From contig NC_068984.1 of the NCBI RefSeq assembly GCF_001194135.2, positions 42,280,391 through 42,320,202 on the forward strand: DNA of 39,812 bases, written 5' to 3'. The stretch's first letter is position 1. Each line of letters starts with the position of its first letter. The notes below the pieces were generated by a model. It was given only the letters and a program-made list of their open reading frames with translations. It had not been told where the DNA came from and searched no databases. This stretch comes from Octopus bimaculoides (taxonomy: Eukaryota). The position numbers and the translations under genes were made by a program. Positions 17,796 to 38,364 of this stretch are shown here, in pieces.

Positions 17796-19607
17796 CTTCA
17801 TATTAATTAGACTTTATGTTTTCTATTCACAAATATCAATTAACTTTATTGTATATCAACCCTATATATATATTTGGTTTTAACGAATAATTCATACCTT
17901 TCTTGTTCTAGCCTAGTAGATCAAACATGAAGCGTGTGTTCCCTTTGTTATGACAGCGGTACCATCTCATACAGAATCGTCTCATTCTGTGTTAGTCTTG
18001 TAACCGCTACAAAAACCATCCAGTATCAGGCTTTATTGCGGGACTTCGACTAAAGGCCCCACCCACTTAAAAACAATCGGGACCCCCTGTATGTTATTTG
18101 AGCTGTGTAATTTCTGGTGTACGATATGTTTGTGTAAATGTCTTGGCTCACCGCAAGCTTGTTTGTATATTCGCTTTCATGCAGAAATCGCCTCCGCACG
18201 CCAGAGACTTTTGGCATGTTTACAAATTAACGAAAAAAGATTTAAGTTCCCCTTCACCAACCTTTCTGATGACGACAACTGCAAGAACAACAGTTACAAG
18301 TTAAATAAGAGGATGATGAAGAAAAAGAAAATGAAAAAAAGAAGAGATAGGAAAAGGAGTTAAAGAAAAAGACAGACAAGAGCAGTGAGGAATATACCCA
18401 AATATACAGAAAGACTATACAGACACACGCACATGCACTCTCTCTCTCTTTCTCTCAAACACAAATACACACATACATGCACACGCACGGACACACACAC
18501 ACATACACATAGGCAACATATAGTGGCACATACAGAGGCAACTATATATAAAAAATATATAAAATCATTATACACGTATGATTATATATGCATGTAGATA
18601 TATAGATATACATATATGTATATACATATATATGGATACATATATATATATATANNNNNNNNNNNNNNNNNNNNNNNNNNNNNNNNNNNNNNNNNNNNNN
18701 NNNNNNNNNNNNNNNNNNNNNNNNNNNNNNNNNNNNNNNNNNNNNNNNNNNNNNNNNNNNNNNNNNNNNNNNNNNNNNNNNNNNNNNNNNNNNNNNNNNN
18801 NNNNNNNNNNNNNNNNNNNNNNNNNNNNNNNNNNNNNNNNNNNNNNNNNNNNNNNNNNNNNNNNNNNNNNNNNNNNNNNNNNNNNNNNNNNNNNNNNNNN
18901 NNNNNNNNNNNNNNNNNNNNNNNNNNNNNNNNNNNNNNNNNNNNNNNNNNNNNNNNNNNNNNNNNNNNNNNNNNNNNNNNNNNNNNNNNNNNNNNNNNNN
19001 NNNNNNNNNNNNNNNNNNNNNNNNNNNNNNNNNNNNNNNNNNNNNNNNNNNNNNNNNNNNNNNNNNNNNNNNNNNNNNNNNNNNNNNNNNNNNNNNNNNN
19101 NNNNNNNNNNNNNNNNNNNNNNNNNNNNNNNNNNNNNNNNNNNNNNNNNNNNNNNNNNNNNNNNNNNNNNNNNNNNNNNNNNNNNNNNNNNNNNNNNNNN
19201 NNNNNNNNNNNNNNNNNNNNNNNNNNNNNNNNNNNNNNNNNNNNNNNNNNNNNNNNNNNNNNNNNNNNNNNNNNNNNNNNNNNNNNNNNNNNNNNNNNNN
19301 NNNNNNNNNNNNNNNNNNNNNNNNNNNNNNNNNNNNNNNNNNNNNNNNNNNNNNNNNNNNNNNNNNNNNNNNNNNNTGACGCGTTCGCGTGAAGAAAAAG
19401 CATGTAAGAATGCATGTTATGATATGTAGAATTGCATTAGCAACAAACTGAAGTTTTCCCATTTTTGAATTTGTTTTTGTTTTCAAGGATCTTGTTGCTA
19501 GCAGACCACCGGCGGTGGCTGACGCTCTCTTTTCAACTTCTTTTTTTTTTTGCTAAACGCGTGAACATAATTTGCAATAACAATATTAATAACAGCAACA
19601 AAAACTA

Positions 19608-19640
<33 letters not shown>

Positions 19641-20375
19641 TATCTCATTATCAACAACAACAACAACTACAACAACAATACAATGGTAACAACAAAATAG
19701 GGCAACGACAACGTTATAGAAAGCAATAGCCAGAACAGTTTTGGAAAAGGGCTGAATTGGTGAAATCGAACGCAGTACTTGCCTGGTATATTCTGACTGA
19801 TCTCACAGCAGGCGGAGTTTGAACTGGAACTGAAGTGACTCAACATGATCTAGCAAACGTGTTTTGTCCTTGGCTCTCAAGACTGTTACCTCGTTACTTC
19901 CACACTTTCACCCTCCTTTTCTTCTTGCTCCTCTTCCTTTTCCTCCTTCTCTTAGACCTGCAGCTGCTGTTAGCCTTGACACTCACGTTAAACCTTCAAC
20001 TCTGGTTGGAAGTGAGGTATCTACTTTGCAAGTCGAGGATTTTTGGTTGCAGAAAGTTTGGGCGTTGCTGGAAGTGCCGGCAAGTAGGTCACTGATAGTG
20101 AGGACGAATAGCCAATAATTATTTTCATTTACGAAAAAAATATTTCATAAAAACTTGCGAAAAACTTGCGTATTTCTAATTTGAAATTGTACGCAGGTAA
20201 TGAAAAACTACACTTTGCTGTCAATAAAACTCAGCAAATCTATACCTAAATTTACAAATATCTTTAGCTGTTAAAAAAATGTTCGCTTTTAAATAGGCTT
20301 TAAACATTTTTATTAGCTATTTCAATTCAAGTAAGTGCATTGTCTAAAGTCGCATTCAATATCTTGCAAATGTAA

Positions 20376-20586
20376 GGCGGTGGACTGGCAGAATTGTTAG
20401 CACACCGGGCAAACTGCTTAGCGGCATTTCGTCTGTCCTTATGCTCTGAGTTCAAATTCCGCTGGGATCGACTTCGCCATTCATCCCTTTCGGGGTCGAA
20501 GCACCAGATGAACACTTGGTTCGATATAATCTTACCCTCTGCACCCAAAGTTGCTGACTCTGTGCCAAAATTTGAAACCAGTATTG
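20376..20586 (+). mobile_element. SINE family A (tail A3), full length
   Basis: GGCGGTGGACTGGCAGAATTGTTAGC...GAGTTCAAATTCCGC...GTGCCAAAATTTGAAACCAGTATT. Confidence 0.9.
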
Positions 20587-20816
20587 TTTTCAAATGTATT
20601 TGAGATCACTGTTGTTACCAATGTCATGCACTGGGGTCATTGTGTTCCTTCATTTCAAATACTGAGGGATTATTTTATAGACAAGGGTGTGACGCAATTT
20701 TCGCTTTGCCCTATCTTCAATATTAGAAACAACACATCTAATGCTATATAATCATTCTTACCCGATATATGTCTCATAGTATCAACGATGACTGTTCTCA
20801 GATTGTTCTATAAATA

Positions 20817-21206
20817 CAGGGTGGGTGGAAAGTAACGGCATTAGAAATTGCTTATAGAATTTTTAGCATCACTGAAGGCATGTCAAAAACCTTTTTTAAA
20901 CAGTCAACACTAATGGGGATTTCTTATTTTCTTATTGTCTTATTTCTTATTTTCCAGATGGCCGGTCACTTGACTGCACAGGAGCGAGCTAAGATAGCAG
21001 CACACTATGAAGTGTGAAATTCCAGTGTTCTTGTTCAGAAATGGTGGCGTACATGGAAAAGTAAGCATGCAACACTACGTCCGGCGACAATAAAAAGTTA
21101 TGCAAAGCTGATGATCACGGGTTCTGTGAACGATGCAATAAATTTGTAAAAGGATTATAGATTTTATAAACAATTTTTAATACCTACTTACTTTTAACCT
21201 ACCCTG
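20817..21206 (+). mobile_element. 390-bp internally deleted Tc1/mariner-superfamily element (DUF4817-like N-terminus)
   Basis: TIRs CAGGGTGGGTGGAAAGTAA / TTACTTTTAACCTACCCTG; TA at 20815-16 and 21207-08; ATG at 20958 gives MAGHLTAQERAKIAAHYEV*NSSVLVQKWWR...LMITGSVNDA. Confidence 0.85.
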
Positions 21207-21929
21207 TAGAACAACAAAGAAACCTTTGTGACTGTGGCAATGCATAGATGCGTTACCTTCCTTCTTTCAAGTGTCTGTGTGACAGTATAGGGTAAAAAAA
21301 CATTTGATTATAATGCGGTCATACTATTTTCTTTCGTTTAAATGTTGCATGCCTAGAGCTAGTCTATTTCAAGACAAAACTAGTACCCCATTCAAATTTC
21401 TATCATCTTTTCATTTGAAAAACAAACAAAAAAAAAAACCTTGCATGTGTGTGTGTGTGTGAATGTGCGTACATTCATGTGTGTGCATATGTGTGTGTGT
21501 GTGTGTACGTGCACATGTATGTGAATGTATATATATGCGTGTGTGCAAGTGCTAAATTCTTGTTTTTATTTTCGGAAAATCACTAGAATTGCTCATTCTA
21601 ATGTTACTGTCGATAGAAAAGTCATTATTATTTGTTTAAACGAGTTTGTCTTCCTGCATAATATTCTTATTTGTAGGTGTTTTTTGTGTGATAGTTTTCA
21701 TTCTTAATTTTTTTCTTTCGGGGGCGTCGCTGCTATTTTCGTAATAGTTTTGTATATGTATGCAGACAAATAAGAGGAGAGAATGTAATTTATCTGCAAG
21801 TAAACTGAAATCTGCATAGGCAGTTTTCCATATTCTTCAAATCTCTCTGTATGAGAAAATAATTAAAAAATTATTAGCTCGTGCAGTTTGAAGGGTGATT
21901 TCAAAACACGTCTGAATAGGTCAGCAGTG

Positions 21930-21942
21930 AATAATAATAACA

Positions 21943-22018
<76 letters not shown>

Positions 22019-22029
22019 TAATAATAATA
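21930..22029 (+). repeat. (AAT)n microsatellite
   Basis: Direct reading. Confidence 0.97.
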
Positions 22030-22288
22030 GGAAGAATTTAAAGCAAGCATGAGAACAGTAAAAGTCGTGCCTATAATAACTGGTGCGTTGGGAACAGTAA
22101 GCAAAGATATAGACAAATGACTGAAGAAGTTTGGAATAGAATGGCCAATAAAGCTCCCATAGAAAGTTTGTCTCTTAGGGACAGCACAGCAAGGAGTATC
22201 AGGAGGGTTCTAAGGAGTCGACAATAGTGGCAGAGACAACAACTGTCTCTACATCTGTCTCTACAATACAGGGCTCAATACTAATAAT
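22030..22288 (+). mobile_element. 5'-truncated R4/Dong-like LINE 3' end
   Basis: RTVKVVPIITGALGTVSKDIDK*LKKFGIEWPIKLP*KVCLLGTA; short UTR ending AATACTAATAAT. Confidence 0.8.
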
Positions 22289-23598
22289 TTTAATGTCGCA
22301 CAAATATGTCTTACGAAACAAAAAAGGCAACTTCAACAGTACACCTTAATCTGGAAGATTAAGAAGAGAGCCAGCCTGGGGTCGAAAAGTCATCCACTGG
22401 CACACATTCTCCTCTGAATATGAACCTGGATGGTCACTTGAACGGGAACTACCTCAACTCGAGTCCTCCAAGTCCACCACCACACCCACACAGAAAGAAA
22501 AATGTAAGAGGAACAAATGGACTCGAGAAGAGTAGAGTATACAGAAGTAATATGTGCCTATTATTATGCATTAGACGAGCTATCTGATGAGATACAAACC
22601 GCACACTCTTATCAAATATGGAGAAGACGAAATCAAGACAGCAGACTACATTTGGACGAAAACAAGTTGGCAAATGTTAGGAGGGATATCTTCAGAAATA
22701 AAAGACTAACAGATAATGGAATAAGCGCGATCAAGCAAGCAGCAGAAAATGATCTAAATATAAGACAGAAAGGAAATGAACAACTAGACGAACCAACCGT
22801 TCACAGGTCTTAATTGAAAGACCACCATCTCACAAGAACACGCAAACGTCTGGAGAAATAAATTGTAATGAACCTGATAAAGATAGCGAGGAAAGTGGTA
22901 AAGAAACAATATTGGTTAACGTGTCGGCTTTATAAAATCAAAACTGCTGACAAATGGTACAAGCACCACGCTGAGGCTGTAACTGAGAGAGAAAACGTAA
23001 CTATTCTGTGGGACTTCCCACTATGTACAGATCAGACCATCAAGGCAAATAAACCAGCTATTGTTGTGAAAGACAAAAGCAATAGAGCCTGTTTATTTAT
23101 TGACATGAGCATATTCTGCGACCATAATATCTCGATAAAAGAATTTGATAAGCTCAGAAAATATAAAGATTTGCTAATCGAAATCGAAAAGATGTGGCAT
23201 CTCAAGACAGTTACAATACCAGTGATTGTAGGAGCACTTGGAATGATCAAAAAAGGAACTGAAAATTATTTAAGAATGATCCCTGGCTTACCATCCATGC
23301 AGGAAGTGCAAAAGATTGTCTTAACTGGTACGTCACACGCATTGAGAAGAGCATTGTCGCTGTAAATTTTATTTCCTTTTCCCCCCTCTATACTTTATTT
23401 GATTACTTTTCTATTTTTTTTGTTTTTTCCCTTTTCTCTCTGTCTTCCCCTTTTTCTCTGTCATATGAATTTCTAAATGGACAACCTGGTGTGCTTGTTT
23501 CAATGGCTTACCAATGTATACAGTCCGTTTTTTTTTTGTTCTAGGCGTCAGAAATGGAAACAGAATTGAAAGAAGATGTTAATGAAAATAATAATAAT
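22289..23598 (+). mobile_element. Internally deleted R4/Dong-like LINE (N-terminus joined to RLE domain, no RT)
   Basis: N-terminal KWTREE/YTEVICAYYYALD...DENKLANVRRDIFRNKRLT; C-terminal ILWDFPLCTDQTIKANKPAIVV..FIDMS..DKLRKYKDL..IPVIVGALG..QKIVLTGTSHALRRALSL* (to 23365); UTR; AATAATAATAAT at 23587-98. Confidence 0.88.
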
Positions 23599-23619
23599 AG
23601 TGAACACGGTCCACTGATT

Positions 23620-25039
23620 TAGTACTGATGTTACAATGGAATTAAGACTCAAGAAGTGCGGAATAATCTACCTAAAAAGGGGCAAGATACAGTTCCTAGC
23701 AGGAACAGAATTACCGAATAAAGACTTGATTATGCAAATTAAAACGGAAAGGGACAAATACCTTCCTGTACTAGAGGCCAACGAGATAATGGAAAAGGAA
23801 ATGAAAAAGCAACTGAGGATGGAGTATTTCTGAAGACTGAGGTTGGTGCTGCCCTCAAAATTTACTGGATGGAATAAAATTCAAGCAGTTAATACATGGG
23901 CGATAGCATCCCTTCGGTATGGAGTGGGAATTATAAAATGGCAAAAGAGAGAAATTAAGAAAATGGATGTCAAGACCAGAAAAATCACAGAGTGATACCG
24001 ATAGGCTGTAGTTGTCCAGAAGGAAGGATGAGACAGCCTAGGGTGGTATATAAAAATGCCGTGGTGCTGCTGTTGAAACACACGAAGAAGTCCGGTGTCA
24101 TCATAACTGAAAATTGTGTAATAAAGAAAAATTTAAACAAGAAATGAACAGAAGAAAAAAGAAAAAGCATGGAAAGAAAAGAAAATGGACGGTCAGTTTG
24201 CAAGAGAAGTGAACGCCAAGACAGAGAGGACCGGTGGCTATGGATGAAGAGGAGTGACCTGAGGATAGAGACAGAAGCACTCATATACGCAGCTCAGGAA
24301 CAAGCGTTAAGGACCAACTATGTGAAGTGCAGAATAGGCAACACTACCGATAGCGACAAATGCAGAATGTGTGGTGAGAGAAGTGAAACGGTATGGTACG
24401 TCGTTAGCGAATGCCCGAAATTGGCACAACGCAAATACAAAAGACGCCATGACAACGTGGCAAAAGTGATCCATTGGGAACTCTGTGGAAATCACGGCCT
24501 ACAAAGAGCAAAGCTTTGGTATCAGCAAACCTTAGAAGGAGTCACCGAAAATGAGAATCGCAAAATCCTGTGGGATGCAATGATCCAGTGTGATTACCTG
24601 ACCAGACATCGGAAACCAGACATTGTTGTGAATAAAAAACAAAGAACATGTATGGTAATCGACATAGTATGCCCCGGTGACAACAGAATCAATATTAAAG
24701 AAGAAAAAAATAAACAACTATGACGATTTGAAGTGGGAAATACGAAAGTTGTCAATGAAAAGAGTAGACGTGATACCAACAGTAATTGGTGCACTTGGAA
24801 GTATCAGCACTCAACTTCCAGCATGGCTAAAAAAAGATCGCTGCAAGTGTGAAGGTAGAACACCTACACAAATCAGCATTGCTTGGAACTGCATGAATTC
24901 CTCGCAGGGTTCTTGAAGCATGACCAGTAAAACAAATGTCACCTTAGTCTGTTGGCTGTGGACAGCTGACACTTTACATCATACCCAGCAATATAAGCTG
25001 TGAGTTTAATACAACAATAATAATAACAATAATAATAAT
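23620..25039 (+). mobile_element. 5'-truncated R4/Dong-like LINE (end of RT, CCHC, RLE, 3' UTR, AAT tail)
   Basis: LKKCG..KRGK..KYL..LEANEI; AVNTWAIASLRYGVGII; AAQEQALRTNY..CRMC..ETVWYVVSEC..RRHDNVAKVIHW; ILWD..RKPDIVV..IDIVCPGD..YDDLKWEI..VIGALG; many stops and frameshifts. Confidence 0.92.
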
Positions 25040-25250
25040 CTTTTCTACTAAAAGTACAAGGCCTGAGATTTTGGAGGAGGGGTTAGGTTGATTACATCGA
25101 CCCCAGTACTTCACTGGTACTTAATTTATCGAACCCAAAAGAGTGAAAGGCAAAGTCAATCTCCGCGGAATTTGAATTCAGATCGTAAAGGAAGATGAAA
25201 TGCTACTAAGTGTTTTGCCCGGCGTGCTAACGATTTTGCCAGCTCGCTGT
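25040..25250 (-). mobile_element. SINE family A (tail A1), full length
   Basis: Reverse complement of head GACAGCGAGCTGGCAAAATCGTTAGC and tail CAGGCCTTGTACTTTTAGTAGAAAAG. Confidence 0.9.
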
Positions 25251-25251
25251 C

Positions 25252-25385
<134 letters not shown>

Positions 25386-27550
25386 AATTCAACAACAATG
25401 ATAATGACTTCGAAGAAGAGTAGAAGGCATCGAATATTGGTGGATGGAGCAGTCAATTATATTGATCATAGTACTTGAGTTTCACTTATTTTATAAATAG
25501 ATTTATTTAGATTATTTTTCAAAGAAGTTTGCAAAAGTAATCTAAATATCAGAATATCATCTGTGCCATTAACACATTTGCAATGTACGCCATAACATAT
25601 GGTTCTATAGCATTGGACTGGAACATAAATGACTTGGATTCTATGGACCGTGTATATTTTCTTTAGAAATATATGTAAAGCATTACTATTACATAAAAAG
25701 TCTTACGAAGATGACTTCATGTAGAAGACGTGGCAGGAGGTGGTCATTGAATGTCAAGGAGCAGTTTAAGAAGGCCATTATTAGTGTTTATAAAAAGCAG
25801 AGTCTGAGGAACCTAGTTGTGTTCTGCGTTAGCAAAGATTATGCTATCAGGATTATGAGATTGGAACAGTTTGATAATTCCAAAATTGTACATTCCTCTT
25901 CTGTTCATTATGTACGACCTTACCCACACTCATAGTTATTAAGTATGTTCACTATATCTTCTCAACTTTAGAATAATTAAAATCTAAATTAAAAAAAAAA
26001 TATGTCAACATAAAATGATATACTGATTATAGATAACACGGTCGAAGTTAAGAACGAGAAAAAGAGGGAGAGGGAGAGGGAGAGAGAGAGAGAGATAGAG
26101 AGAGAGAAAGAGGGAACATAAACTTAAAGTAACGATAAAGTTCCTAAAACTCGTAGCAAAATTTTCCTGGAATGGCAGTCTACCATCTTATAAAGGGGAA
26201 AATGTATTAGATAGTATACTCTTAGCTATGTTGCATCTGAAGCTGAGATCGAACGGTCGTAGTAGAAATGCCTGTAACGATTGAGCATCTTGTTCAAGAA
26301 TGACCAAGAGTTAACCACAAAAACAACCATCAGGGCTTTCCTTTGCATGGTCTATATTCCGTAAAATGAATAATCTACAAATAAATAGAAGTACAGGCCA
26401 GGATAAAGAAACCCAGCCTAAAGAAACCCAGCCTAAACGCAACGTCTGGATACAGGAATAAATTTCATTATCAAGAGTATCGAGAAAGCATGCATAAATA
26501 CATACATATACATATGCACGCATATGCGCGCGTATTCATGTCATGTGTGTATGTATGCATGTATGTATATATGTTTGTATGTATGCATGTATTTCTTTTG
26601 AATAAATGGCATTTCATCTTGATGGCATATTTTCTACTCTAAGAAAAAATATTTTACATAGATTCAAGTTAATCTACATTTCCGCGAAATACTTCAAAAC
26701 TCTATAACATATCAGCTCTTTCCGGTCACTGCGTTTGAACATTTAAGAGAAAAAGTCAAAGTCAAAAAGCCTTATAGGGTATATATGAATCTGAACCGGT
26801 CTTAGAATATGAATATAGTACAAGCACTTACCATACAAACAACAACTGGATTTTAAAGAATAAACCTGATAATAATTTTCTTTAAAATTTACGAAATTAT
26901 ATTAATGAATGACACAGCAATATCAAATGTATATAATGTGCTAAAGCTAGCTGCAATTAAGAGGAATTGTATTGATATGAGTGTTGAATTAAAAGCATTA
27001 TAACAGCTAAATGAAGGCTTGAAAAGGTTTGGTGGTTAGGTTGTTTGGTTCCTGATAATTAGGGCATGAGTTTAGTTTCTGGACCGGACAGCTCACCTCG
27101 TTGTGTTCTTGTGCAAGGCGCTTGCTTTACCGTCTAGGTTGTGAACGAGCACAAGCTGAATACTGGTGTAGCATCTCACCGCCTCTCTCTCTCTCTTTCT
27201 CCAGCCGCCTCAAGCTGGATGTGCCGCTGTGTCAGAAAGGAGGGAGGAGTGAGTGTTTATGTCTGCTTGCGAATTCTTAGACAACTAAAACAGCAAAAGC
27301 AAGGTACGTTACCAAGCCATATTCGATTACAGCTGACGGTTTTCTGTATTATAATTAAAGAATATGTCCATTCTTGGAATAATACACAACCATTTCTGCA
27401 GAGACATTGGAAAGTTACATCTATAGTCCTAGACATAGGCACCTTCCAGAAAATAGTAATTATAGAATGTATAAATATTGTTACGCCATCCTCAGAGAGC
27501 GATTTTTAATCTTGAACAAATTTATACGTTTTCCAACATGTATCTAATTA

Positions 27551-27726
27551 CAGTTCTATATTTAAGAGATGAGAAATTACGTACATTATTTACATTTGAC
27601 GGATATTTGTCCTCATCTTGTTTGTTGTTAACACGTTTCGGCTGATATACCCTCCAGCCTTCATCAAGTGTCTTGGGGAAATTTCGAACCTGGGTTCTCA
27701 TTCCTAAGGTATTTTTTCGATGTTGC

Positions 27727-27727
<1 letters not shown>
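27551..27727 (-). mobile_element. Short Penelope-like repeat carrying a degenerate hammerhead-ribozyme motif
   Basis: Minus strand GACAC-TTGATGA-AGGCTG-GAGGGTATAT-CAGCC-GAAAC-GTGTT; abuts the (ATT)n tract. Confidence 0.6.

Positions 27728-27811
<84 letters not shown>
27728..27811 (+). repeat. (ATT)n microsatellite
   Basis: Direct reading. Confidence 0.98.
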
Positions 27812-27812
<1 letters not shown>

Positions 27813-27889
27813 GCCCACGGGCATATGGTGTAGTGGTTAAAAGCACGGGCTACTAACACCAAGATTCCGTGTTCGATTCCAGGCAGTGG
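27812..27889 (+). mobile_element. Short tRNA-derived SINE or tRNA pseudogene with (AAT)n tail
   Basis: A-box TGGTGTAGTGG, B-box GTTCGATTCC; acceptor stem does not pair. Confidence 0.65.
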
Positions 27890-27920
<31 letters not shown>

Positions 27921-28077
27921 CAACAACAACAACATAGAAAAATATTAATAATCATAATAATACCGCTGGACGTGACAGCGGCTGGACGTTTCTTCGCTAC
28001 TCTGACTTGTCAGCAGCAGAAGACACAGAAACACTAATACAACCCAGCAGGATAACTGAAAAATAAATCTAAAAGAC

Positions 28078-28600
28078 TGGAATATCTACAGTTTCCTGTG
28101 AGTATTTTGAATTTCCCTCAAAATAAATTAAGGAACTTACATATCTACAGCTTTCGAACACATGAACAATCAGCTTTAAAACCTTTAATATCTACAACTT
28201 CTGTGAATGCTTATCCTTTCCTTTCCCCTGAGTATTCGAAAATGTAAACATCCTCTTTATTCGAAGAACACTACAGTTTTCTGTGTTCGGATAGACAAAA
28301 AATCATCTCCAGTAAATTTTAGAACCCTAATATCTACAATTTTCTGTGAAAAAATTTTACCTTCCTTTTCTTTTCGTTCCGTTTTCCCTGAATATTCGAA
28401 AATGTAAACATATTTTTTTTATTGCAAAAAAACAAAAAAAAAAAAAGCAAAATAAAACACCCACAGTCTTCTCTGAACAGACATATAAACGAACACTTCA
28501 AAAAATTTAGAAACTTTAATATTTCCAATCTTTCTGTCTTCCCCGATTAATAGAATATGTAAACATGCCTTTTATTACAACAACACAATTAAATGCACGA
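28078..28600 (+). repeat. Degenerate tandem repeat, ~140-190-bp units
   Basis: AATATCTACA..TTCTGTGA at 28081, 28187 and 28329 (variant at 28518); [G/A]AATGTAAACAT-type blocks at ~28240, ~28400 and ~28555. Confidence 0.7.
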
Positions 28601-29373
28601 TAAAAAATTAAGGAAGTAAGCACCTATCAATGTATACATACTGCACAACTACAAAACTGTAAACCACAGCAAAACTTTTAAAAAGAAAGAAACATTCCAA
28701 AAGAAAAAGAAAAAGAAATTCAGAAATTAAAAAATCCAACAAGGTAAACATCTCTTCCTCTTACTATTCCCAAAGACTACCAGTAATTACAAATAGAACA
28801 GGTTGAATTGCTTCTTTTCAAGGCTAAAGGAGCGCTTTCAGTGGTCACTGGCAATAGTAAACACATTTGACCTCCGCTGACCCAAAGGGTGCGAAGATTA
28901 TTTTGTCTATATGGCTGACTTCCTTACCATCTGCCGAATCTATAGACCTCCCTACCATCTGCCAACCTGTAGAATTTGATCTATTCTCCAAGCTGCTACC
29001 CAACTATTTCCGTCAACAACCACATATTTATGATTATCTCAAGTACAAGACAAAAGTGGAAAATAAAGAACATTTAGTAAAATATTTTAATAATAAATAG
29101 AAATAGTAATAATGATAATAAGAATGGTAGTGGTGGTGATGGTGTTAGGCATTAATGAGTTAGGCATTAATGAGAAAATAGAATCCAGTATTTAATTGGC
29201 CTCTTTTTTTAACATCGACTAAAGAAAAAGAGGAAAGATAAAGTTTACTCCAGTCGGACTTGAACTCAGCAATGAAAGACATTTTGTCCTTTGTCCTACT
29301 GATTCTGCCATTCAACGCCTCGTTTTCTTTTCGGAACAAAATGACGCTGTAGTCACTCATTTTGAAAACGATA

Positions 29374-29381
29374 GATGATGA

Positions 29382-29417
<36 letters not shown>

Positions 29418-29422
29418 CGATA

Positions 29423-29453
<31 letters not shown>

Positions 29454-29550
29454 GGAGGAGGAGGAGGAGGAGGAGGAGGAGGATGACGATGATGATGATG
29501 ACGACGTTGATGATGACGATGATGATAACGATGATGATGACAACGACGAT
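29374..29550 (+). repeat. Compound (GAT/GAC/GAG)n microsatellite
   Basis: Direct reading. Confidence 0.95.
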
Positions 29551-30759
29551 AAAGATGGGATTTGTAATCAGAACTGATTACTGAAAGTATAATATTGTGT
29601 TAACACTTAATAGAAATGCTAGATATTTGTGCCGTTCGAGTATTAACGACTGACGTCGATTCTGTTGACTTAATTCGTATAATGATAACATCATATAATT
29701 ACTCAACGTTTGTAATATAAACCCAGTTGATTGGAAAAAAAAGCAACAACAGAAGATTGAGTACATTCATCATTTCTGTTTTGTAAAATGCATTAAATCA
29801 ATTTTCTCTCACTTTACGAAAGAAGTTACAAAGATCTGAACGAAGAACTAACTATGGAAATTAAAATAGGGATTAAAAAAAGAACACGTCCCGGCATGAA
29901 AATGAAGAACAGAAAAGAAAGCGTAGCGTTAAAAGAATAAATTAAGAATTGTGACTGTTGAATAGAAGAATGATGGAATGTTCTTCTATTGTCGAGCCAT
30001 GGTTAAGTTGAAATAATTTACAGACTGCTTAAAGTAAAAATTGGGTTATGACCTTCAACTAATCCTACATCACTTATCAAAACCAAAGTTGGTGTAAGAG
30101 CTGGTGCAGAAATAATATATGCATTGGGAAATGAGAAAGGCAGTAGAAATGATGTTGAATATAGGTAAAATATAGAACTGTCATCACAGACAGGCAGATA
30201 GACAGACAGACAGACACACACACACACACGTATGCGTATGTGTTTGTAAATGTATGCATATATGTGTATGTTTGTTTGTAGATGTATATACACGTGTGTG
30301 CGTGCGTGTATACATGTATGTAAATATATTTATTCATACATAAATATATGCATACATATACATACATATAAATATATACATATACATACATATAAACATA
30401 CAAATATATGCGTATACATATAAATGCATATAAACATATACAAATATATGCATATACATATAAATGCATATATTTATACATATATATACTTATAAATACA
30501 TACATATATATGTATGTAAGTACGTATGTATGTATGTATGTATGTATTTATGCATGCATGCATGTATATATGTATGCATGCATAACATTCAAAGGAGTGA
30601 TTGCCAGCATACTAAATGTAATGAATAGGTTTTGAAATAGAAGAAAAGTTATCTAGAAAAGACAGTGGAATCTTGAAAGATTTATGAAATTTTTCACTCA
30701 GTAAACTGCTAAGTAATTACAAACAAACAAGATGAATTGGTATGATGAATTAAAAATAT

Positions 30760-31250
30760 AGGAAAGCCATATTATAGAAATTTGCAACTACAGTTTGAAA
30801 GATAATAAGCCGTCAGTTTGCTGGAAATGAAAGAAGCTACAGTTACAGATTGAATATTAATAAGAACAGGCAGATATATTTATAAAACTTAGGGCTAGTA
30901 ATTAGGGAAAGTAAAACTACAAAAATCTTGTAATTTGCAACGAATGCTTAGAATTGCTGAAAGGCTCAGAGAGAAAGTAAAATCTAGAATATGTGAAAAT
31001 TGATGTTAAAATCATTTCACAATACCATGTAAACATGAGGATTTTGATTGCACCAAAGAATGATCATATTTTAAAGTTAGTGTTAAAAACTCTTGAGATA
31101 TATTTATAAAGCAATAGGTTTCGTAATAGAGTATTGAGTTAGCATTACTTTCTTAGCTGAAGACTATTACTGAGGGAAATAAACACTAGAAGTGTTTGCC
31201 TGGGCTCCAGGTGTAGATTTATGCTGCACATATTACTGAAGAAACATACT
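30760..31250 (+). mobile_element. Possible extremely decayed LINE RT (RTE-like)
   Basis: Only faint peptides (NLQRMLRIAE, DVKIISQ, ILKLVLKTLEIY) in roughly RT order. Confidence 0.2.
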
Positions 31251-31374
31251 AGTCAACATGGTGAATAGTACGCTGAAGTAGTACCAGGCAGGATACACAG
31301 TTTGTTAAAGCAACATCAGGTACAGAGCTGAAAGTTATACAAACCTTTTTGGAAGTTTTTTATTCTGATTACAT

Positions 31375-31589
31375 ATTGGTTTCTAATTTTGGCTCAAGGC
31401 CAGAAATTTCAGTGGATGAGGTGAGTCGATTACATTGACCCTAATGTGCAGCTGGTAATTATTTTATCGACCACACATGTACGAAAGACAAAGTGGACTT
31501 CGGTGGAACTTGAACTCAGAACGTAAACACGGACGAAATGCCGCTGAATATTTTGCTCGGCGTGCTAATGATTCTGCAAGCTCGCCACC
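31375..31589 (-). mobile_element. SINE family A (tail A3), full length
   Basis: Reverse complement of head GGTGGCGAGCTTGCAGAATCATTAGC and tail GAGCCAAAATTAGAAACCAATAT. Confidence 0.9.
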
Positions 31590-32016
31590 GTTTCATGATT
31601 ATATATTACTAGAAAAGGACAATCGTCAGTTAAAGAGGTTCTACATTGTTATCCAATTTGATAGAAGTAGTAGCGAAATAATATCGTGCGTTTTAAAAAA
31701 GGTACCATTGGATAATGGATTTCTAATCTACAAAGTAAATAACTAAATAAATACAAGGCAAAATGGTTGTAGATGCAACGCTCTGAAGAGTTGTGGATAA
31801 TCTGGAATGAACAACGACATCAATAACAGCAACAACAACGGCAACAACAATAATAAAATTAACATGAAAATAATATTCAGAAAATGTTGAGTACGATTAA
31901 AAAGAAGGCAAATAGAAATATCAGAAAACAGCACTTTGTGGATTGTGCAATGCATCAGACAGACAAATCCATAAATTGCAATAGAGGCAAATAATATACA
32001 ACAATATTAATATAAT

Positions 32017-32220
32017 CCTTTCTGTTATAGGCCTGGAATTTTGGGGAAGGATGCTAGTCGATTACATCCACCCCAGTATTTGCCCGCTATTTATTTTATC
32101 GACCCAAAAAGTATGGAAGACACAATCGACCAGGTCGGAATTTGAACTCAGATCGTAAATACGGACGAAATGCCGCTAAGTATTTGCCCAGTGTGCTAAC
32201 GATACTGCCAGCTCGCCGTC
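32017..32220 (-). mobile_element. SINE family A (tail A1-like)
   Basis: Reverse complement of head GACGGCGAGCTGGCAGTATCGTTAGC and B-box GAGTTCAAATTCC. Confidence 0.88.
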
Positions 32221-32585
32221 TTGCAAGGTTAATATAATACGGTAAAATGAATATAATTCTACATTAAAGTTAATATGCATTTACATTAGAACTCACGTGA
32301 TGATTCGGGTAGTTGATACCGAAAATCTGAATGTTGTAACAGAAAAAGAAAAAAAAAATAGTACCTGAACAATGATAAAAGAACCTAAAAGCTGGGGTTG
32401 CGCCAACATGGTCTGAAATAAATGAAAGTGTAAAACAAAAAAAAAACGTCTGAAATAATAAAAAAAATATGGAGAAATATTTTTTGTGCTTCAAGAACAA
32501 TAGGTTTACGTGACACACAAAACTTATCGTTAAAAATGACTGAAAGAAAGAAACGCATTTCAAATATATATTTTAAGCATTACTA

Positions 32586-32832
32586 TTGGGGTTGTCCGGA
32601 AAGTTCGTGCCGATTTTTAAAGGAGAGAAAAAGGTCAATAAATACTTGCCATTACATTTTTAATGAACCAAATATGAACCATTTTGTTGCACAATACGTC
32701 TTCATCTTTCCTTTAACTTAAAAATACCCTCTTCCCAGAATTGAGGTGGTTTCATGGCAAAGAATTCATCAAGGTATTTTTTACGTCATCAAAGGAATTG
32801 AAATCTTTTCCATTAAGACTATTCTGAGAACG
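32586..32832 (-). mobile_element. Mariner 3' end (transposase C-terminus and TIR)
   Basis: TA at 32584-85, then TIR TTGGGGTTGTCCGGAAAGTTCGTGCCGATTT; minus strand reads RSQNSLNGKDFNSFDDVKNTLDEFFAMKPPQFWEEGIFKLKERWRRIVQQNGSY. Confidence 0.9.
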
Positions 32833-33572
32833 TTGGACAACTTCCAAAAGTCCTTAACCTGGCAATGCTACAGAGGTGCCTTGCCCGTTTGGTATAAGCT
32901 CGTAAGACACGGTAAGCGTCAGTCGCCGACCTTTCCAAGATGCGGGGGACACAGGGAAACCGTCTCCCACGTTATTGTTCAGTGTCCAGAGATATCTAAA
33001 ATGTAGGCTTATGCTGAACACCTGTTGTCTGGCGAAGGAAGAGTACAGCTGTCAACTGTGTCAATTATAAAAATTGACCCACCAGGAGTTTTAACCAACG
33101 AAGGTAAGAATTGTTTTCTCACGGTTGTAGCAATAGCGAAAGAAGTAGTATGGAAGACTAGGATAAAAGGAATTAAGACAGGCAAGTTTATCTCTGGCCA
33201 CAATTTAGATCATTTTTTACTTTTCATTTGAAAAGGAAGATGTGGCTGGAGAAGAGATGTCTGTCGGTGTACGTTCTAAAAGAGATGGAAGCATGTTGCA
33301 CGAGTGTTGTGCGTGCAGGGAACTGTGTGAATAGACGGGAAAAAAAGAACAAAAAAAAAGGTACCAGCGATAGATCGGGGCTTGTGGAGTTGGAGCATGG
33401 CCTGATCATCGCTTCATTTGTATTGTCCCTGTATTGTTAATTTCATCCGATTTTTTATATTTTATTTAATTTTTAAAAGTCACACTTAACGTAAAATCAT
33501 ATCGCATTACTGATCCCATCAGTTGTTCTGTCCATTTCTATGTTTAGCCCCCGGTGGGCAGTAAAGAAATTG
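32833..33572 (+). mobile_element. 3' part of the L1/Tx1-clade LINE (zinc-binding C-terminus, 3' UTR, tail), inverted relative to its 5' part
   Basis: LDNFQKSLTWQCYRGALPV..RCGGHRETVSHVIVQCP..AIAKEVVWKTR..HLKRKMWLE; tail GTGGGCAGTAAAGAAAT followed by a TSD. Confidence 0.88.
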
Positions 33573-33752
33573 GTATTTCGTCTGCCGTTACGTTCTGAGC
33601 TCAAATTCCGCCGAGGTCGACTTTGCTATTCATCCTTTCGGGGTCGATAAATTAAGTATCAGTTACGCACTGGGGTCGATGTAATCGACTTAATCCCTTT
33701 GTCAGTCTATGTTTGTCCCCCTCTATGTTTAGCACCTTGTGGGCAATAAAGA
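33573..33752 (+). mobile_element. Body and tail (type A2) of a SINE A copy whose head is at 37825-37884 (-)
   Basis: Begins mid-element at GTATTTCGTCTG, where the detached head ends. Confidence 0.88.
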
Positions 33753-33759
33753 AAAAAAC

Positions 33760-33955
33760 GAAACATTAGCACGCCGGGCGAAATGCTTACCGGTATGTCG
33801 TCTGCCTTTGCGTTCTGAGTTCAAATTCCGCCCAAGTCGACTTTGCCTTTTATCCTTTCGGGTCGATAAATTAAGTACTAGTTACGTACTGGGGTTGATC
33901 TAATCGACTGGCCCCCTCCCCCAAAATTTCGGGCCTTGTGCCTACAGTAGAAAAG
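33760..33955 (+). mobile_element. SINE family A (tail A1) lacking its first ~15 nt
   Basis: GAAACATTAGCACGCCGGGCG...GGGCCTTGTGCCTACAGTAGAAAAG, followed by a TSD at 33957-33972. Confidence 0.9.
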
Positions 33956-34448
33956 CCTATTTGAATCGCATGTCCTTTATGAGGTATCCCTTCTGTTCAC
34001 GAGGCGTTATGCGAATTCATCGAACATTACTTAACTGACCTCTGTTCTCAATTTCAACGGAGAGGATTTTTTTCATTAGTGCTTAATTAACATCAACATT
34101 ACAATGACTGGTTTTCTTTAAATTCAGAATTATCTTATTTCATTTAATAGCTTTATACACAGCATCATTCAATTTTGCAGTTAGAATTTCACGGCAAGTT
34201 ATAACATTTGTAAATAATACTCTTTTAATGGAGCTGCAGTTGGGGATTTCCACTTTATTATTTTTCGACATTGGATCGTTATCTGTCTTTGAGTTATTTC
34301 AAGGCCTATTTGACATTGGTTAGAACTGCCTATATCATGCCAGCGTTTCTGCAGTCATTGGGAATTTCTATGTTGCTTTTTCCCCCAGAGTTTACGACGC
34401 AATGTTTGCATTTTTCAGCATGTTTAAATGTCTTTTCAGGTTTTAGTA

Positions 34449-34576
34449 TTGGGTTGTCCGGAAAGTTCTTGCCGATTTATAGTAGCTTACCTTTCGACTT
34501 ATTTTAGAACATGGTTGAGTCCATAAAATAGGATTGGACTGCACCTCCATTTAGAGCACAGTTTAAGCTATCTTTT
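34449..34576 (+). mobile_element. Mariner 5' end (TIR and 5' UTR), same family as 32586-32832
   Basis: TA at 34447-48, then TIR TTGGGTTGTCCGGAAAGTTCTTGCCGATTT; non-coding interior differs from the 32586 end. Confidence 0.8.
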
Positions 34577-34579
34577 GAT

Positions 34580-36508
34580 TGTCTGTTCCCTCCATCCAGC
34601 GCCCAACAACGCTGTCTGAAGGCATTGACTTGCTAACCCAGGTGCCGAGCTGCAAGCCGACCGACTTTTCCCTGTTAATCTTTGCTCCTGCCACCTCCTC
34701 GTAAGCCTCAATAGTCTTAATCACTTCACGTAGGCATGCTACTGAGGTTACGGTGATAGTGATATCATCCACGTAAGCCGTAATAAACTCCTCTAGATCT
34801 GGTTCTCTCGGAATGCCACTCAACCTTCGCAGTAGGGGCTCGAGAGCCACCACATACAAAAGTGGTGAGAGCGTACATCCTTGACGAACCTAGCACCTGA
34901 TGCAGAACGGCTTCGAAAGGAAACCGTTCACCGGAACTATCGAGTCAATGTTGTGGTACAAGGAGATAAACTACCTGAGGAAGCCAAGGCCCTGGCCAAA
35001 CCGCACAAGCACAGTCGCCAAGTATCGATGATCAACCCTATCAAAAACTTTAGACTGGTCCAAATGTACCAATGCCCCACCTTTGCCAGATTTATTACCA
35101 ACCCTCTCTATGGTATAGTGAATAAGATGGTGGGCATTCTGAATGGTTCTGCCTGGGATGGCACATGTCTGTGCCTCCCCGACTATACCATTCGCGACAC
35201 GCGCCAACCTTTTTGCTAAGACTTTGGCCAAAATCTTCACTTCTGCGTTTAACAGAATGATGGGCCTGAAATTCTCTATAACGTCCCCCTTGTCCGGGTC
35301 CTTTCTGACCTATGTCACTACTCGCCGGCGCACAGATATGGGGATAAACCCATTCTGTTGCCAGTTCGCGTACACGTCAGCCAGTAGATGCCCGAGCAAG
35401 TCTGGCATACATTTATACAGCTCGTACGGAAGACCATCAAGTCCCGGCGACTTACCCGCTTTACAGTCGGCCAAAGCCTCCATCACCTCCAAAGGCGTGA
35501 TTGGTCCTTCACAAGACTCCGCATCCAACCCTGAGAGACATGGCAGCCCGACAAGAAAGTCCTAGAGGGCACTCTCACCACCAGGACCGCCGTCACCCCC
35601 GAACAGCTGGGCGAAGTACTCCCGAAAGGCCTCACACATTTTCTTGGGTTCGTTTACCAATACACCATTTTGATTCGTCAAAGACCGAATAGTGGAACTG
35701 TTTCGTTGCCGAGCTTCCACCACTCGGGCCCATCCAGCGGCCTTGATTCCTTCACTTCCCATCGCACGTAACTTAGCTCTGGAAATACTTCCCATGTGTT
35801 GGGCTTCAAGATGCTGGTTTAATTCCAGTCTTTTCACCCTCGCTTGGTCCGCATTACCAGTCCTCCAGGCTTCTTCAACTTCCTTAACTAGACCATCTCC
35901 TATTCTACGTCCCTTCTTAGCTAAACTTATGCTAAACCTAATAGACTCATATTTGATGGCTCTTTATAGGGCGTACCACCATTTGTTATTAATGATGGTA
36001 CCTGTTAAAGCCCTCTGTATTAACATCTCGATCTACTTTCTATACTACTCAATCGCCAAAAGGGACGTATTGAGTTTCCAGTAGCCAGATCCCTGACTAT
36101 GCAACTTATCTACCGTCAGTTTACAAGTAACCATCTTGTGGTCACTGTAGCTGCCTAGAAAAAATTGTGGACACTCGGCTATGGACTTATCTGTTTCTCT
36201 AATTAAAATCCTATCTAGATATATTCTGGAAAACCCATCATTATTTGACAACGTCCACAGGGGAGTGTTCGGGTGTTCCGACCTATATGGATCTGCTAGC
36301 TGAAAGTGACTTAGCAGATCTCGTAAGCCTGGGTTACATCTTCTGTTCATGTTCGAGCCAACACAATCTGTGTATGCGTCACATATTGTGTTAAAGTCTC
36401 CTAACAATACTAGCGAATGCGACGTGGCCAGGAACTTGCCCAGGTCACGAAAATATTCACTTTGCGGGCCCATAATGTTGGGTGCATAAATAGCGACCGA
36501 CTAGCCTG
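34580..36508 (-). pseudogene. Disrupted ORF2 (APE endonuclease and reverse transcriptase)
   Basis: IYAP, LLGDFN, YLDRIL, SDHKMV, YWKLNTSLL; GKSPGLDGLP, NFRPIILLN..KILAKVLA, LDQSKVFDRVDH, VRQGC.LSPLLY, YVDDITI, GAKINREKS; several in-frame stops. Confidence 0.93.
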
Positions 36509-36888
36509 NNNNNNNNNNNNNNNNNNNNNNNNNNNNNNNNNNNNNNNNNNNNNNNNNNNNNNNNNNNNNNNNNNNNNNNNNNNNNNNNNNNNNNNNNNNN
36601 NNNNNNNNNNNNNNNNNNNNNNNNNNNNNNNNNNNNNNNNNNNNNNNNNNNNNNNNNNNNNNNNNNNNNNNNNNNNNNNNNNNNNNNNNNNNNNNNNNNN
36701 NNNNNNNNNNNNNNNNNNNNNNNNNNNNNNNNNNNNNNNNNNNNNNNNNNNNNNNNNNNNNNNNNNNNNNNNNNNNNNNNNNNNNNNNNNNNNNNNNNNN
36801 NNNNNNNNNNNNNNNNNNNNNNNNNNNNNNNNNNNNNNNNNNNNNNNNNNNNNNNNNNNNNNNNNNNNNNNNNNNNNNNNNNNNNNNN

Positions 36889-37576
36889 AATTTTCTCTTC
36901 CTGTTTGATTAAGACTGCCGCCACCAACCACATAGGATCCACTTCCGGTGGGACCCTTGTGATTTTAATTCTGGACGTTCTCATCCCCATATAGGTGGGG
37001 ATGAAAACCACGTCGTCCGTTTTCAGTGTTTCTACTGAATGTTTTTGTGCAATTTCTTTGTTGGTAAACCTTACTTCCACCGTACCAAATTTCCTGCCTC
37101 TTGTCAGATAAACATGTCACTCCAGATTGGTTTCAGGCACTTCTCTATCTTCTCTTCTGTAATTTTCTTAATTTTTCTTTTTTGGAAACAGTATGTTTTA
37201 AATATTGTTTTTTGTTTTTCTTCTAATAGTAATTTCTCCGGTGGTTGTATTTTAACCACGTTATCGTTTATTTGCATCATTTCACAGTGTTTCATGAAAT
37301 CACACTTATTCGTCGAAAGCAGCCGGGTTCTACCCCCAGCTGCCAACTCAAAACTTTTTTTTCTTTTTTCGGTTGTTCAGTTTGGATGCTAGGTGCATCA
37401 ATTATTCTTTTGGACACAATACTTTTGTTTTTTTGGCAAACTCGGGAATTCTTCTAGTGAAAGTTCTGATGAGCTTTCAGACACATCTCCAAATATTCAT
37501 ACATTTTGTCATTCTTTTTTGCAACGGGGGAATGAAAAATTCCATTGTTCGTAGTTGGCTCCTCGCCAGACAACAT
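36889..37576 (-). pseudogene. Disrupted ORF1 of the L1/Tx1-like LINE
   Basis: Upstream of ORF2 on the same strand; VRF...FIPTYMGMRTSRIKITRVPPEVDPMWLVAAV resembles the Tx1-type ORF1 RRM-like region. Confidence 0.7.
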
Positions 37577-37824
37577 GTAATTCTTCCTTTCAACAGGTGA
37601 AACAAACAGGTGAAACAAGGCTCCTCGTTAGACGACATTCTTCCCCCCAACGGGGGAATGAACAACGCGTGCTTTCTACAAGCACTTATTGTTTTCAAAT
37701 GAAAACTCCAACAGTTAAGAAATTCAACAATTTAACAAAAAACAGCAGTTATTATCAATATTAACACTAAGAAACAGCAATTTTCACCACGAACATATGT
37801 GCGACGCGTAAGAAACAAAAGACA

Positions 37825-37884
37825 CAGACGAAATACTGCTTAGCATTTCGCCCAGCGTGCTAACGTTTCTGCCAGCTCGCCGCC
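37825..37884 (-). mobile_element. Detached head of SINE A (target of the LINE insertion)
   Basis: GGCGGCGAGCTGGCAGAAACGTTAGCACGCTGGGCGAAATGCTAAGCAGTATTTCGTCTG; TSD-like 16-mer at 37887-37902. Confidence 0.9.
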
Positions 37885-38364
37885 TTCATGCGATTTAAAT
37901 AGTATTTAATCAATGGGAAATTAATAATTTGACAAATGCGAACTATCGTAGGAAAAAAGATGTAGCGTACTTTAGTACTTTACTCAAAATATTCTCTCAC
38001 TCTTTCTCTCACTTCTCTTCTCTGTCGATAATAGATTTTCTGAAAATGATGACTGTAGCAGAAAAACCAAGAACACTGAACTGAAAATGTAATGAAAAAT
38101 AGATGATAGAATTAAATATTTCTAGTACATACAGTAATATTAAAAGTTTTAAAGAAATATTCCCAGAAGGTACCTTCCCTTTTATGCTCATTGTTTTAAT
38201 TGTTAACATTAAAAGAACCAATATAAAATGCTGTGTTTGAAATAAATATGAATCTTTTGTTATTTGTAACAATATGATTTAATTCACATTCTTACTAGCA
38301 AAATTTTAAAATTTTGCACTTTAAAAATACTTCTAACATTTTCAAGATGAAACTCATGAGTAAT

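Follow-up and report, generated by a model that had tools for sequence, protein, structure and literature searches.

Nested, decayed transposons point to a small inversion, with sequence missing at its junctions, in an Octopus bimaculoides assembly

Within a 39,812-nucleotide stretch of the Octopus bimaculoides assembly (GCF_001194135.2; contig NC_068984.1, positions 42,280,391 to 42,320,202 of the forward strand; hereafter the window), two mariner ends point the same way, each is fused to LINE sequence, and the two parts of the LINE lie on opposite strands. The arrangement raises the question of whether a segment of the chromosome was turned around, and if so by what route, or whether the order of the pieces arose in some other way. 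A preliminary description of the locus, made from the letters alone, had proposed one inversion of about 1.75 kb, and all four of the signatures of inversion are present at or close to where it had placed them. The explanation that we consider likely is a real chromosomal inversion of ~1.75 kb (32833-34586) within old, dead, nested transposons; the rearrangement shows no sign of function. The features of the locus are collected in Table 1.

Table 1. Features of the rearranged region (positions in the window; a dot marks features without strand)
Feature	Position	Strand	Basis
TA flanking the left mariner end	32584..32585	.	read directly from sequence
Mariner 3' end, antisense on +: TIR ~32586-32619, 3' UTR, last ~50 transposase codons	32586..32832	-	Mos1/SETMAR match; L014/L064 3' ends
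J1, mariner / LINE junction	32827..32833	.	homology limits; placed within ~7 nt, up to ~5 nt assignable to either side
Decayed C-terminal part of LINE ORF2 (2-3 stops), from zf-RVT to near its stop	32833..33342	+	Pfam zf-RVT; P0001; L001
LINE 3' UTR and family-typical tail ...GGTGGGCAGTAAAGAAA(TT)	33343..33571	+	tail motif in L002; also ends SINE#1
SINE#1 body and tail, from SINE position ~50	33572..33754	+	aligned with 7 other window SINE copies
LINE TSD, 3' copy GTATTTCGTCTG	33573..33584	+	exact copies here and at 37825-36 only
SINE#2, from SINE position ~16, after an A-rich linker	33760..33956	+	alignment with window SINE copies
SINE-composite 16-bp TSD, 3' copy CTATTTGAATCGCATG	33957..33972	+	motif scan; adjoins SINE tail
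Single-copy non-TE DNA inside the flipped segment	33973..34446	.	no self-match in window; no match to any fetched locus
TA flanking the right mariner end	34447..34448	.	read directly
Second mariner end: TIR 34449-~34481 and 104 nt of interior, in which an inward-reading ATG lies at 34513	34449..34586	+	TIR match
J2, mariner / LINE junction	34578..34587	.	limit of LINE homology (34587)
LINE ORF2: C-terminal half of AP endonuclease, RT through YVDD and ~60 aa, decayed (7 stops)	34587..36508	-	Pfam; relatives
Run of 380 N (assembly gap) splitting the LINE between its ORF1 and ORF2 codon ~103	36509..36888	.	flanks matched to L002
LINE ORF1 fragment	36889..37113	-	tblastx to L002 1420-1644; weak L005 match
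LINE 5' part: ORF1 start and 5' UTR with three ~60-nt repeats, to the element's 5' end	37114..37824	-	SINE homology stops at 37825
SINE#1 head (SINE positions 1-62); last 12 nt (37825-36) = LINE TSD 5' copy	37825..37886	-	SINE alignment
SINE-composite 16-bp TSD, 5' copy CTATTTAAATCGCATG	37887..37902	-	motif scan

The division of the LINE, with its 3' part on the plus strand and its 5' part on the minus strand, agrees with the Pfam domains: Exo_endo_phos and RVT_1 run along the minus strand from 36497 to 34587, and zf-RVT runs along the plus strand from 32830 to 33324. The plus-strand piece (32830-33324) corresponds to residues 741-906 of the 912 residues of the related protein P0001 and to nt 2464-2830 of the related locus L001, and the minus-strand homology ends at 34587, equivalent to L001 nt 1799 and P0001 aa 520. 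Measured against these relatives, 220 codons (664 bp; L001 nt 1800-2463, P0001 aa 521-740) are missing at the LINE join, which bears out the earlier report of a loss from behind the RT domain to the zinc domain; a search for the P0001 aa 521-740 region elsewhere in the window found none. A check for two different subfamilies gave the same two best relatives for both pieces, P0001 and P0006, with identities of 56-57% in the RT part and 46-51% in the C-terminal part; this drop parallels that between the two relatives themselves (71% in the RT part, 65% in the C-terminal part), and by their sequence likeness the two pieces belong to one family.

ORF2 holds an AP endonuclease, an RT and a C-terminal zinc-binding domain and is accompanied by an ORF1 fragment and a 12-bp target-site duplication (TSD); relatives sharing this architecture include proteins named Tx1-like, and the element classes on these features as an L1/Tx1-like non-LTR retrotransposon. 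The ORF1 fragment (36889-37113) matches L002 nt 1420-1644 by tblastx, upstream of the ORF2 of that locus, and weakly matches residues 174-219 of the L005 ORF1 (E 0.019). The tail motif of the LINE occurs 254 and 620 nt past the ORF2 stop in the Argonauta relative L002, and the same motif closes SINE#1. The preliminary description had put the end of the LINE at the A-run at 33340-59, which we rejected as a poly(A) end: the run sits at the ORF2 stop, the family tail lies at 33554-69, and the true 3' end is at ~33569. Exact-protein look-ups of the longest LINE ORF (36045-36473) and of the ORFs spanning J1 (32746-33006) and J2 (34563-34859) returned no record.

For the mariner, the earlier claim was that two ends of one family both point rightwards. 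Their orientation stands: the TIR core GGGTTGTCCGGAAAGTTCNTGCCGATTT has exactly two copies in the window, both on the plus strand (32589-32616 and 34451-34478; shuffled sequences are expected to hold none), they are the only TIRs of this type within 40 kb, and each is preceded by TA (32584-85 and 34447-48), the target-site duplication of mariners. The right TIR matches the left at 30 of 32 positions, and the likeness fades after ~33 nt, so that these are two different ends rather than duplicates of one end. Homology identifies the left piece, beyond reasonable dispute, as the C-terminus of a transposase and the 3' end of a mariner: it matches residues 297-344 of the 345 residues of the Mos1 transposase (E 2e-8) and also SETMAR, and along ~240 nt shares 68-69% nucleotide identity with the full-length mariners L014 and L064 at their 3' ends (alignment score 108, against a shuffle mean of 26). 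Mariner homology of this piece is certain to 32826 and probable to 32832.

The claim of common family is less firmly borne out for the interior of the right piece, which is not mariner-like in searches of PDB and Pfam (no match) or when aligned with nine related full-length mariners at their 5' ends (no better than shuffles, p = 0.37); a protein search with the concatenated mariner fragments gave no candidate. It is nevertheless plausible that this piece is the mariner 5' end, presumably 5' UTR and the first ~24 codons, with the TIR as the only part common to both ends, and its TIR lies within 140 nt of the right breakpoint in the orientation that an inversion requires. Together the pieces amount to 385 nt of mariner, against ~1.24 kb in relatives; ~0.85 kb is absent at the breakpoint, part of which may have been lost before the inversion. 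Mos1-type mariners and their internally deleted or MITE derivatives likewise have TIRs of ~32 bp and TA flanks, and here the C-terminal 49 residues align to Mos1 (297-344); unlike them, the ends at this locus are in direct orientation, 1.86 kb apart, and the catalytic domain, which would carry the DD(34)D triad, is absent. This TIR is shared by relatives that occur as 1.24-kb copies and as MITEs of ~120 bp. Metagenome contigs with this TIR (Ga0157362-67) were used only as distant mariner references; a search of them for the cephalopod SINE and for an orthologous flank found neither.

The TSDs give two further signatures. As had been described, the copies of the LINE TSD lie on opposite strands: the 12-bp sequence GTATTTCGTCTG occurs exactly only at 33573-84 (+), next to the LINE tail, and at 37825-36 (-), next to the LINE 5' end. 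The proposal that a 16-mer is the TSD of the outer SINE also holds. Its copies at 33957-72 (+) and 37887-902 (-) agree at 15 of 16 positions and are the sole two matches in the window even when up to three mismatches are allowed. A 15/16 match within 5.7 kb is not rare by itself, and the weight of the pair comes from its position, one copy beginning right after the SINE tail and the other ending right before the SINE head; rough arithmetic puts the chance of a pair at such positions at ~1e-7. Another 16-nt match of this kind, between the LINE 3' part (33020-35) and the 5' UTR (37563-78), was set aside, ~0.4 such matches being expected by chance.

When the segment 32833-34586 alone was flipped in silico, the mariner, the LINE, the 12-bp TSD and the 16-bp TSD were all restored, reproducing what the preliminary description had predicted. 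The mariner becomes a 385-bp remnant with TA flanks and inverted TIRs (32589-616 on plus, 32941-968 on minus). The LINE becomes collinear with L001 on the minus strand, from nt 2830 to nt 98, broken only where it jumps from nt 2464 to nt 1799, which leaves one 664-bp hole. The two copies of each TSD come to share a strand, nested as 16-mer, 12-mer, LINE, 12-mer, 16-mer. The flipped segment also carries ~470 nt of single-copy DNA (33973-34446), and what was turned is thus genomic DNA and not a product of retrotransposition. Nested transposons and their TSDs serve here as built-in orientation markers, by which a small inversion, or a small contig placed the wrong way round, can be recognized from one assembly alone.

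We infer the following order of events. Insertion of a SINE composite would have produced the 16-bp TSD, after which a full-length L1/Tx1-like LINE would have entered SINE#1 in the same orientation, producing the 12-bp TSD; a mariner would have come to lie ~0.5 kb away, in single-copy DNA. Later, a break or template switch would have occurred once in the mariner and once in LINE ORF2, just past the RT domain, and the segment between the two breakpoints would have been rejoined in reverse. This is best read as an inversion of the delINVdel type, made by non-homologous joining and by no transposon enzyme. The class is known from catalogues of human complex structural variants (PMC5338099). The locus shares with it one contiguous segment reversed relative to both flanks, as seen in the flip of 32833-34586, two novel junctions, loss of sequence at the LINE junction and probably also at the mariner junction, and breakpoints lacking long homology. 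It differs in having been recognized by transposon forensics in one assembly rather than from read pairs, in its very small size (1.75 kb), in its cephalopod host, and in a mariner deletion that may be partly older than the inversion. As a known kind of structural mutation, neutral in appearance, in dead transposons, it matters little, and it was not seen to affect any gene or regulatory feature. If it is real, scoring the two junctions as present or absent would give a clean marker for comparing populations or species in this cephalopod.

The junctions had been placed at ~32832 and ~34578; homology keeps the left one at 32827-33 and refines the right one to 34578-34587, positions fixed within 7-10 nt, as the available references are just 66-69% identical. 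Nine nucleotides at J2 (34578-86) are assigned to neither element, and the joins appear to lack repeat homology, with microhomology of a few bases at most. Self-comparison of the window revealed no inverted repeats at 32832/34586. An inverted likeness between the junctions (GACAACTTCCAAAAG / GACAATCAAAAG) was considered as a mediator and dropped, since its best alignment score, 18, is reached by 10% of random window pairs (p = 0.10).

The inversion had been described as one with resection. The inversion and the loss at the LINE join hold good; resection is only one route to such a loss, and the mariner loss may be partly older. A second route, which we regard as a tentative possibility, is replication template switching of the FoSTeS/MMBIR type, in which a fork leaves the mariner, copies the opposite strand and jumps into the LINE, skipping ~0.85 kb and 0.66 kb. 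Two switches would give the deletion-inversion-deletion layout, microhomology may account for the few bases at J1 (32827-32) that are ambiguous, and the 9 nt at J2 have no assigned origin; against this, no templated insertion or duplication was seen at the locus, and references only 66-69% identical are too distant to establish microhomology. Template switching is a sub-case of the inversion explanation and not an alternative to it, and we lean slightly towards end-joining of two double-strand breaks over two replicative switches.

An assembly artefact would instead require that the genome itself runs collinear through a complete mariner and a complete LINE, and that a 1.75-kb contig bounded by repeat interiors was misoriented with two gaps closed to zero. 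The scaffold is rich in gaps: the window holds eight N runs (77-905 nt), and one of these falls within this LINE; what both joins lack is transposon interior, which short-read assemblers tend to drop or collapse; and a contig of 1.75 kb is of the small size that scaffolders misorient most often. However, unbridged places elsewhere in the window are written as N runs and there are none at J1 or J2. As had been stated earlier, neither junction has an N gap: the map of N runs is empty from 19377 to 36508, and both junctions thus lie within one unbroken stretch. Moreover, the junction flanks have no overlap that could cause false merging of contigs, two independent chimeric joins would be needed, and assembly ran straight through the RT region, which in a LINE is repeated more than any other part. 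We therefore regard this reading as unlikely, and that the assembly reflects the DNA of the animal is what we infer. The gap at 36509-36888 touches neither junction, but the LINE-TSD and 16-mer signatures use sequence beyond it and depend on the scaffold across it, which is backed only by the order of ORF1 and ORF2 on one strand. On L002 the two flanks of the gap fall at nt 1644 and nt 2957, and ~1.3 kb of that relative thus stands against 431 nt here. Were the arrangement an artefact, it would flag a local assembly error beside an understated gap.

The suggestion that a break in the mariner started the inversion found no support; the breakpoint is internal and not at the TIR tip where transposase cuts. 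We consider it very doubtful that this is a real, still polymorphic germline variant whose mariner breakpoint came from a break made or provoked by mariner activity, for example interrupted gap repair after an attempt at excision; in that case the seed of a local deletion-inversion would have been a cut-and-paste element whose TIR tips took no part. It is very improbable that the inversion is a by-product of transposon enzymes, through LINE twin priming, alternative transposition by mariner transposase, or recombination between inverted repeats, all three of which are known to give transposon-linked inversions.

Aberrant or alternative transposition of cut-and-paste elements such as Ac/Ds and the P element gives inversions with breakpoints exactly at the TIR tips. 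One breakpoint here is likewise in a DNA transposon, but the breakpoints fall within the mariner, ~245 and ~138 nt in from the tips of its TIRs, and both tips are still joined to TA. Inverted-repeat recombination would not remove sequence, and there are no inverted repeats at the breakpoints (p = 0.10, as above). In that its 5' and 3' parts face opposite ways, the LINE superficially resembles a product of twin priming (PMC2837659). In L1 twin priming, however, the two portions abut within one same-strand TSD pair and the host DNA is unturned, whereas here 1.2 kb of other DNA, with SINEs, unique sequence and a mariner end at 33572-34586, separates the two LINE parts and was turned together with the LINE 3' portion; the TSD copies are on opposite strands; and the minus-strand part meets its flank at the true 5' end of the element, not at an internal point.

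To our knowledge, target-primed insertion cannot yield a LINE that lacks its 3' end, so the 34587-37824 piece was cut off after insertion. A reading in which truncated mariner and LINE copies inserted separately, without any inversion, is already refuted by the geometry and hardly credible, common as 5'-truncated LINEs and fragmentary mariners are in such genomes: the minus-strand piece without a 3' end is impossible by insertion, the plus-strand piece is flanked by mariner (5') and SINE (3') and has no TSD of its own, both pieces share one 16-bp TSD and one split SINE, in which the SINE#1 body flanking the plus-strand piece continues the SINE#1 head flanking the minus-strand piece with an exact 12-bp overlap, and a single flip accounts for four features.

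A preliminary description had proposed that flipping one ~1.75-kb segment would give back a TA-flanked mariner with inverted TIRs, a collinear LINE and both target-site duplications. Scripted reversal of the segment (see the table) reproduced all of these: the mariner became a 385-nt remnant with inverted TIRs and a TA at each side, and the LINE lay on one strand, collinear with L001 (a locus related to the LINE) apart from one jump between nt 2464 and nt 1799. The nested order, entirely on the minus strand, is then 16-mer (the duplication of the SINE composite), SINE#2, SINE#1 body, 12-mer (that of the LINE), LINE, 12-mer, SINE#1 head and 16-mer. The nested-transposon reconstruction is correct. 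Since the segment includes about 470 nt of single-copy DNA, chromosomal DNA was turned, not a retrotransposition product. The window is AT-rich, repeat-laden eukaryotic sequence with eight N runs, and a SINE with a tRNA head is present in about ten copies.

Features at the inversion and elsewhere in the window
Feature	Position	Strand
Tandem SINE copies	3876-4330	
N-free stretch holding J1 and J2	19377-36508	
18 nt left of each TIR	32566-32583; 34428-34446	
Left mariner piece	32586-32832	
J1 (left mariner/LINE junction)	32827-32833	
Inverted segment	32833-34586	
LINE 3' end	about 33569	+
LINE end resembling SINE#1 tail	33513-33569	
SINE#1 tail	33690-33754	
12-mer copies	33573-84; 37825-36	+; -
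SINE composite with 16-bp duplication	33572-33972 with 37825-37902	
45-bp duplication	33760-33804; 37825-37869	
Single-copy DNA	33973-34446	
Right mariner piece	34449-34586	
J2 (right mariner/LINE junction)	34578-34587	
N run in LINE	36509-36888	
ORF1 fragment	37113-36889	-
5' UTR repeats	37510-37665	

In 40 kb there are exactly two copies of the TIR core, each on the plus strand and preceded by TA, in agreement with the two rightward-pointing mariner ends first described; these are alike for about 33 nt only, as expected of one element's opposite ends. Alignment proves the left piece to be the 3' end: its antisense translation aligns with residues 297-344 of the 345 in Mos1 transposase (E 2e-8), and at the DNA level it shares 68-69% identity over 240 nt with the 3' ends of full-length mariners that carry the TIR. 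The right piece is plausibly, though not provably, the 5' end; it carries the TIR and, 65 nt in, an ATG that reads inwards, the interior gave no match in Pfam and PDB searches, and its similarity to the 5' ends of related mariners was no higher than that of shuffled sequence. The 18 nt left of each TIR match at 11/18 in direct orientation, probably through AT-rich target preference or chance.

The 3' part of the LINE is indeed on the plus strand (Pfam zf-RVT) and the 5' part on the minus strand (Exo_endo_phos and RVT_1). Three lines of sequence evidence identify the two pieces as one element. Both share the same two best relatives, the proteins P0001 and P0006 (56% and 57% identity in the RT part, 49-51% and 46-48% in the C-terminal part), and the drop parallels the one seen when P0001 is compared with P0006 (71% to 65%); Argonauta hians is among the sources of the closest relatives, which points to a cephalopod, probably an octopod, as the host. 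The minus-strand piece ends at P0001 aa 520 (L001 nt 1799, window 34587) and the plus-strand piece begins at aa 741 (L001 nt 2464, window 32830-34); the 220 codons (664 bp) missing at the join were not found elsewhere in the window. To our knowledge, insertion cannot make a LINE piece lacking its 3' end, and the two are therefore halves of one insertion, parted later. ORF2 ends near 33342, at an A-run, and the tail (...GGTGGGCAGTAAAGAAA) lies about 227 nt beyond; this tail is also present after ORF2 of the Argonauta element and at the SINE#1 end. It adjoins SINE#1 at SINE position ~50, the LINE 5' end adjoins the SINE#1 head at position 62, and the SINE#1 parts on the two sides overlap by exactly 12 nt.

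The 12-mer GTATTTCGTCTG occurs in the window only as two exact copies, on opposite strands as had been reported. The 16-mer pair, ascribed to the outer SINE and likewise upheld, is the window's only match, and it carries weight because of its position, one copy directly after a SINE tail and the other directly before a SINE head. A single 16-bp duplication surrounds SINE#1 in full length, a linker rich in A and SINE#2 from position ~16. This may be one SINE insertion of chimeric or dimeric form (template switch), or else a LINE carrying a transduced SINE fragment may have gone into SINE#2, with the 45-bp duplication (87%); under either reading, the duplication copies are on opposite strands. 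Both pairs depend on the scaffold link across the 380-N gap, because both use sequence beyond it. This gap lies inside the LINE and reaches neither J1 nor J2. To its left, the minus strand encodes ORF2 from about codon 103-106 (VAIYAPN...), and to its right is the ORF1 fragment. The flanks thus share a strand and follow the order expected within a single element, but they are not continuous (431 nt apart, 380 of them N, versus 1313 nt in the Argonauta relative, L002 nt 1644 and 2957), and the reading frame cannot be carried across. The gap stands for ~1.3 kb of this closest alignable relative; its written length is probably ~0.9 kb too short, or else the LINE copy is deleted there.

At J1, mariner homology is certain to 32826 and probably extends through codons R-S of a conserved stretch, FRSLQNSL, as far as 32832; at J2, the nine bases preceding the LINE end have no assignable origin. 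No inverted repeat was found at the breakpoints, and the apparent likeness of the sequences flanking the two junctions does not exceed chance; the references are just 66-69% identical, so microhomology at J1 and J2 is not readable to the base. The best-supported reading is a non-homologous inversion with two junctions and loss of sequence at each of them, two double-strand breaks with end-joining being slightly favoured over two replicative template switches. The earlier idea that a break in the mariner set off the event finds neither support nor contradiction here. The suggestion that sequence is missing at both breakpoints stands for the LINE; the mariner lacks about 0.85 kb relative to 1.24-kb relatives, a loss that may partly predate the inversion, since the related family has many derivatives that are internally deleted or MITE-like. 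An assembly error is unlikely: the scaffold is rich in gaps and the repeat interior is what is absent at both joins, but two independent false joins would be required, the junction flanks have no overlap to cause a false merge, and Ns, written elsewhere where bridging failed, are present at neither junction, as originally stated. Twin priming (PMC2837659) is rejected, since the minus-strand LINE piece meets its flank by its genuine 5' end and a target-site duplication, as in a normal full-length insertion, and transposon enzymes are excluded by geometry, the breakpoints lying within the mariner and not at its tips. The layout matches deletion-flanked inversions (delINVdel), which have been catalogued as one class among complex structural variants (PMC5338099). 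This is a new instance of that class, without function and without a new mechanism; the two junctions would serve as a good marker.

One metagenome set (L006-L125; JGI Ga0157362-Ga0157367) contains at least 120 exact matches to the 25-nt core of the mariner TIR, among them full-length copies of 1.24 kb and MITE derivatives of ~120 bp. Internally, these share only ~68% identity with the mariner in the window, and the cephalopod SINE is absent from these loci; therefore, the TIR occurs in another host too. The LINE 5' UTR holds three copies of a ~60-nt unit. Distant LINE relatives from marine metagenomes (L003 194-2494; L005 1279-3477) have an ORF1 of unusual length (732-766 aa), which lacks Pfam domains and lies 8-24 nt upstream of ORF2. 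In its final ~57 nt, the LINE resembles the SINE#1 tail and, more loosely, all other SINE tails in the window (e.g. 4030-4060, 5166-5200, 25034-25070), and the motif recurs after ORF2 in the Argonauta relative (L002 6240-6282 and 6600-6648); this family of L1/Tx1-like LINEs is probably the partner that mobilises the SINE. The head-to-tail tandem SINE copies, with a repeated linker between them (..ATTATTAAGATTATTTCAG), are a satellite-like array.
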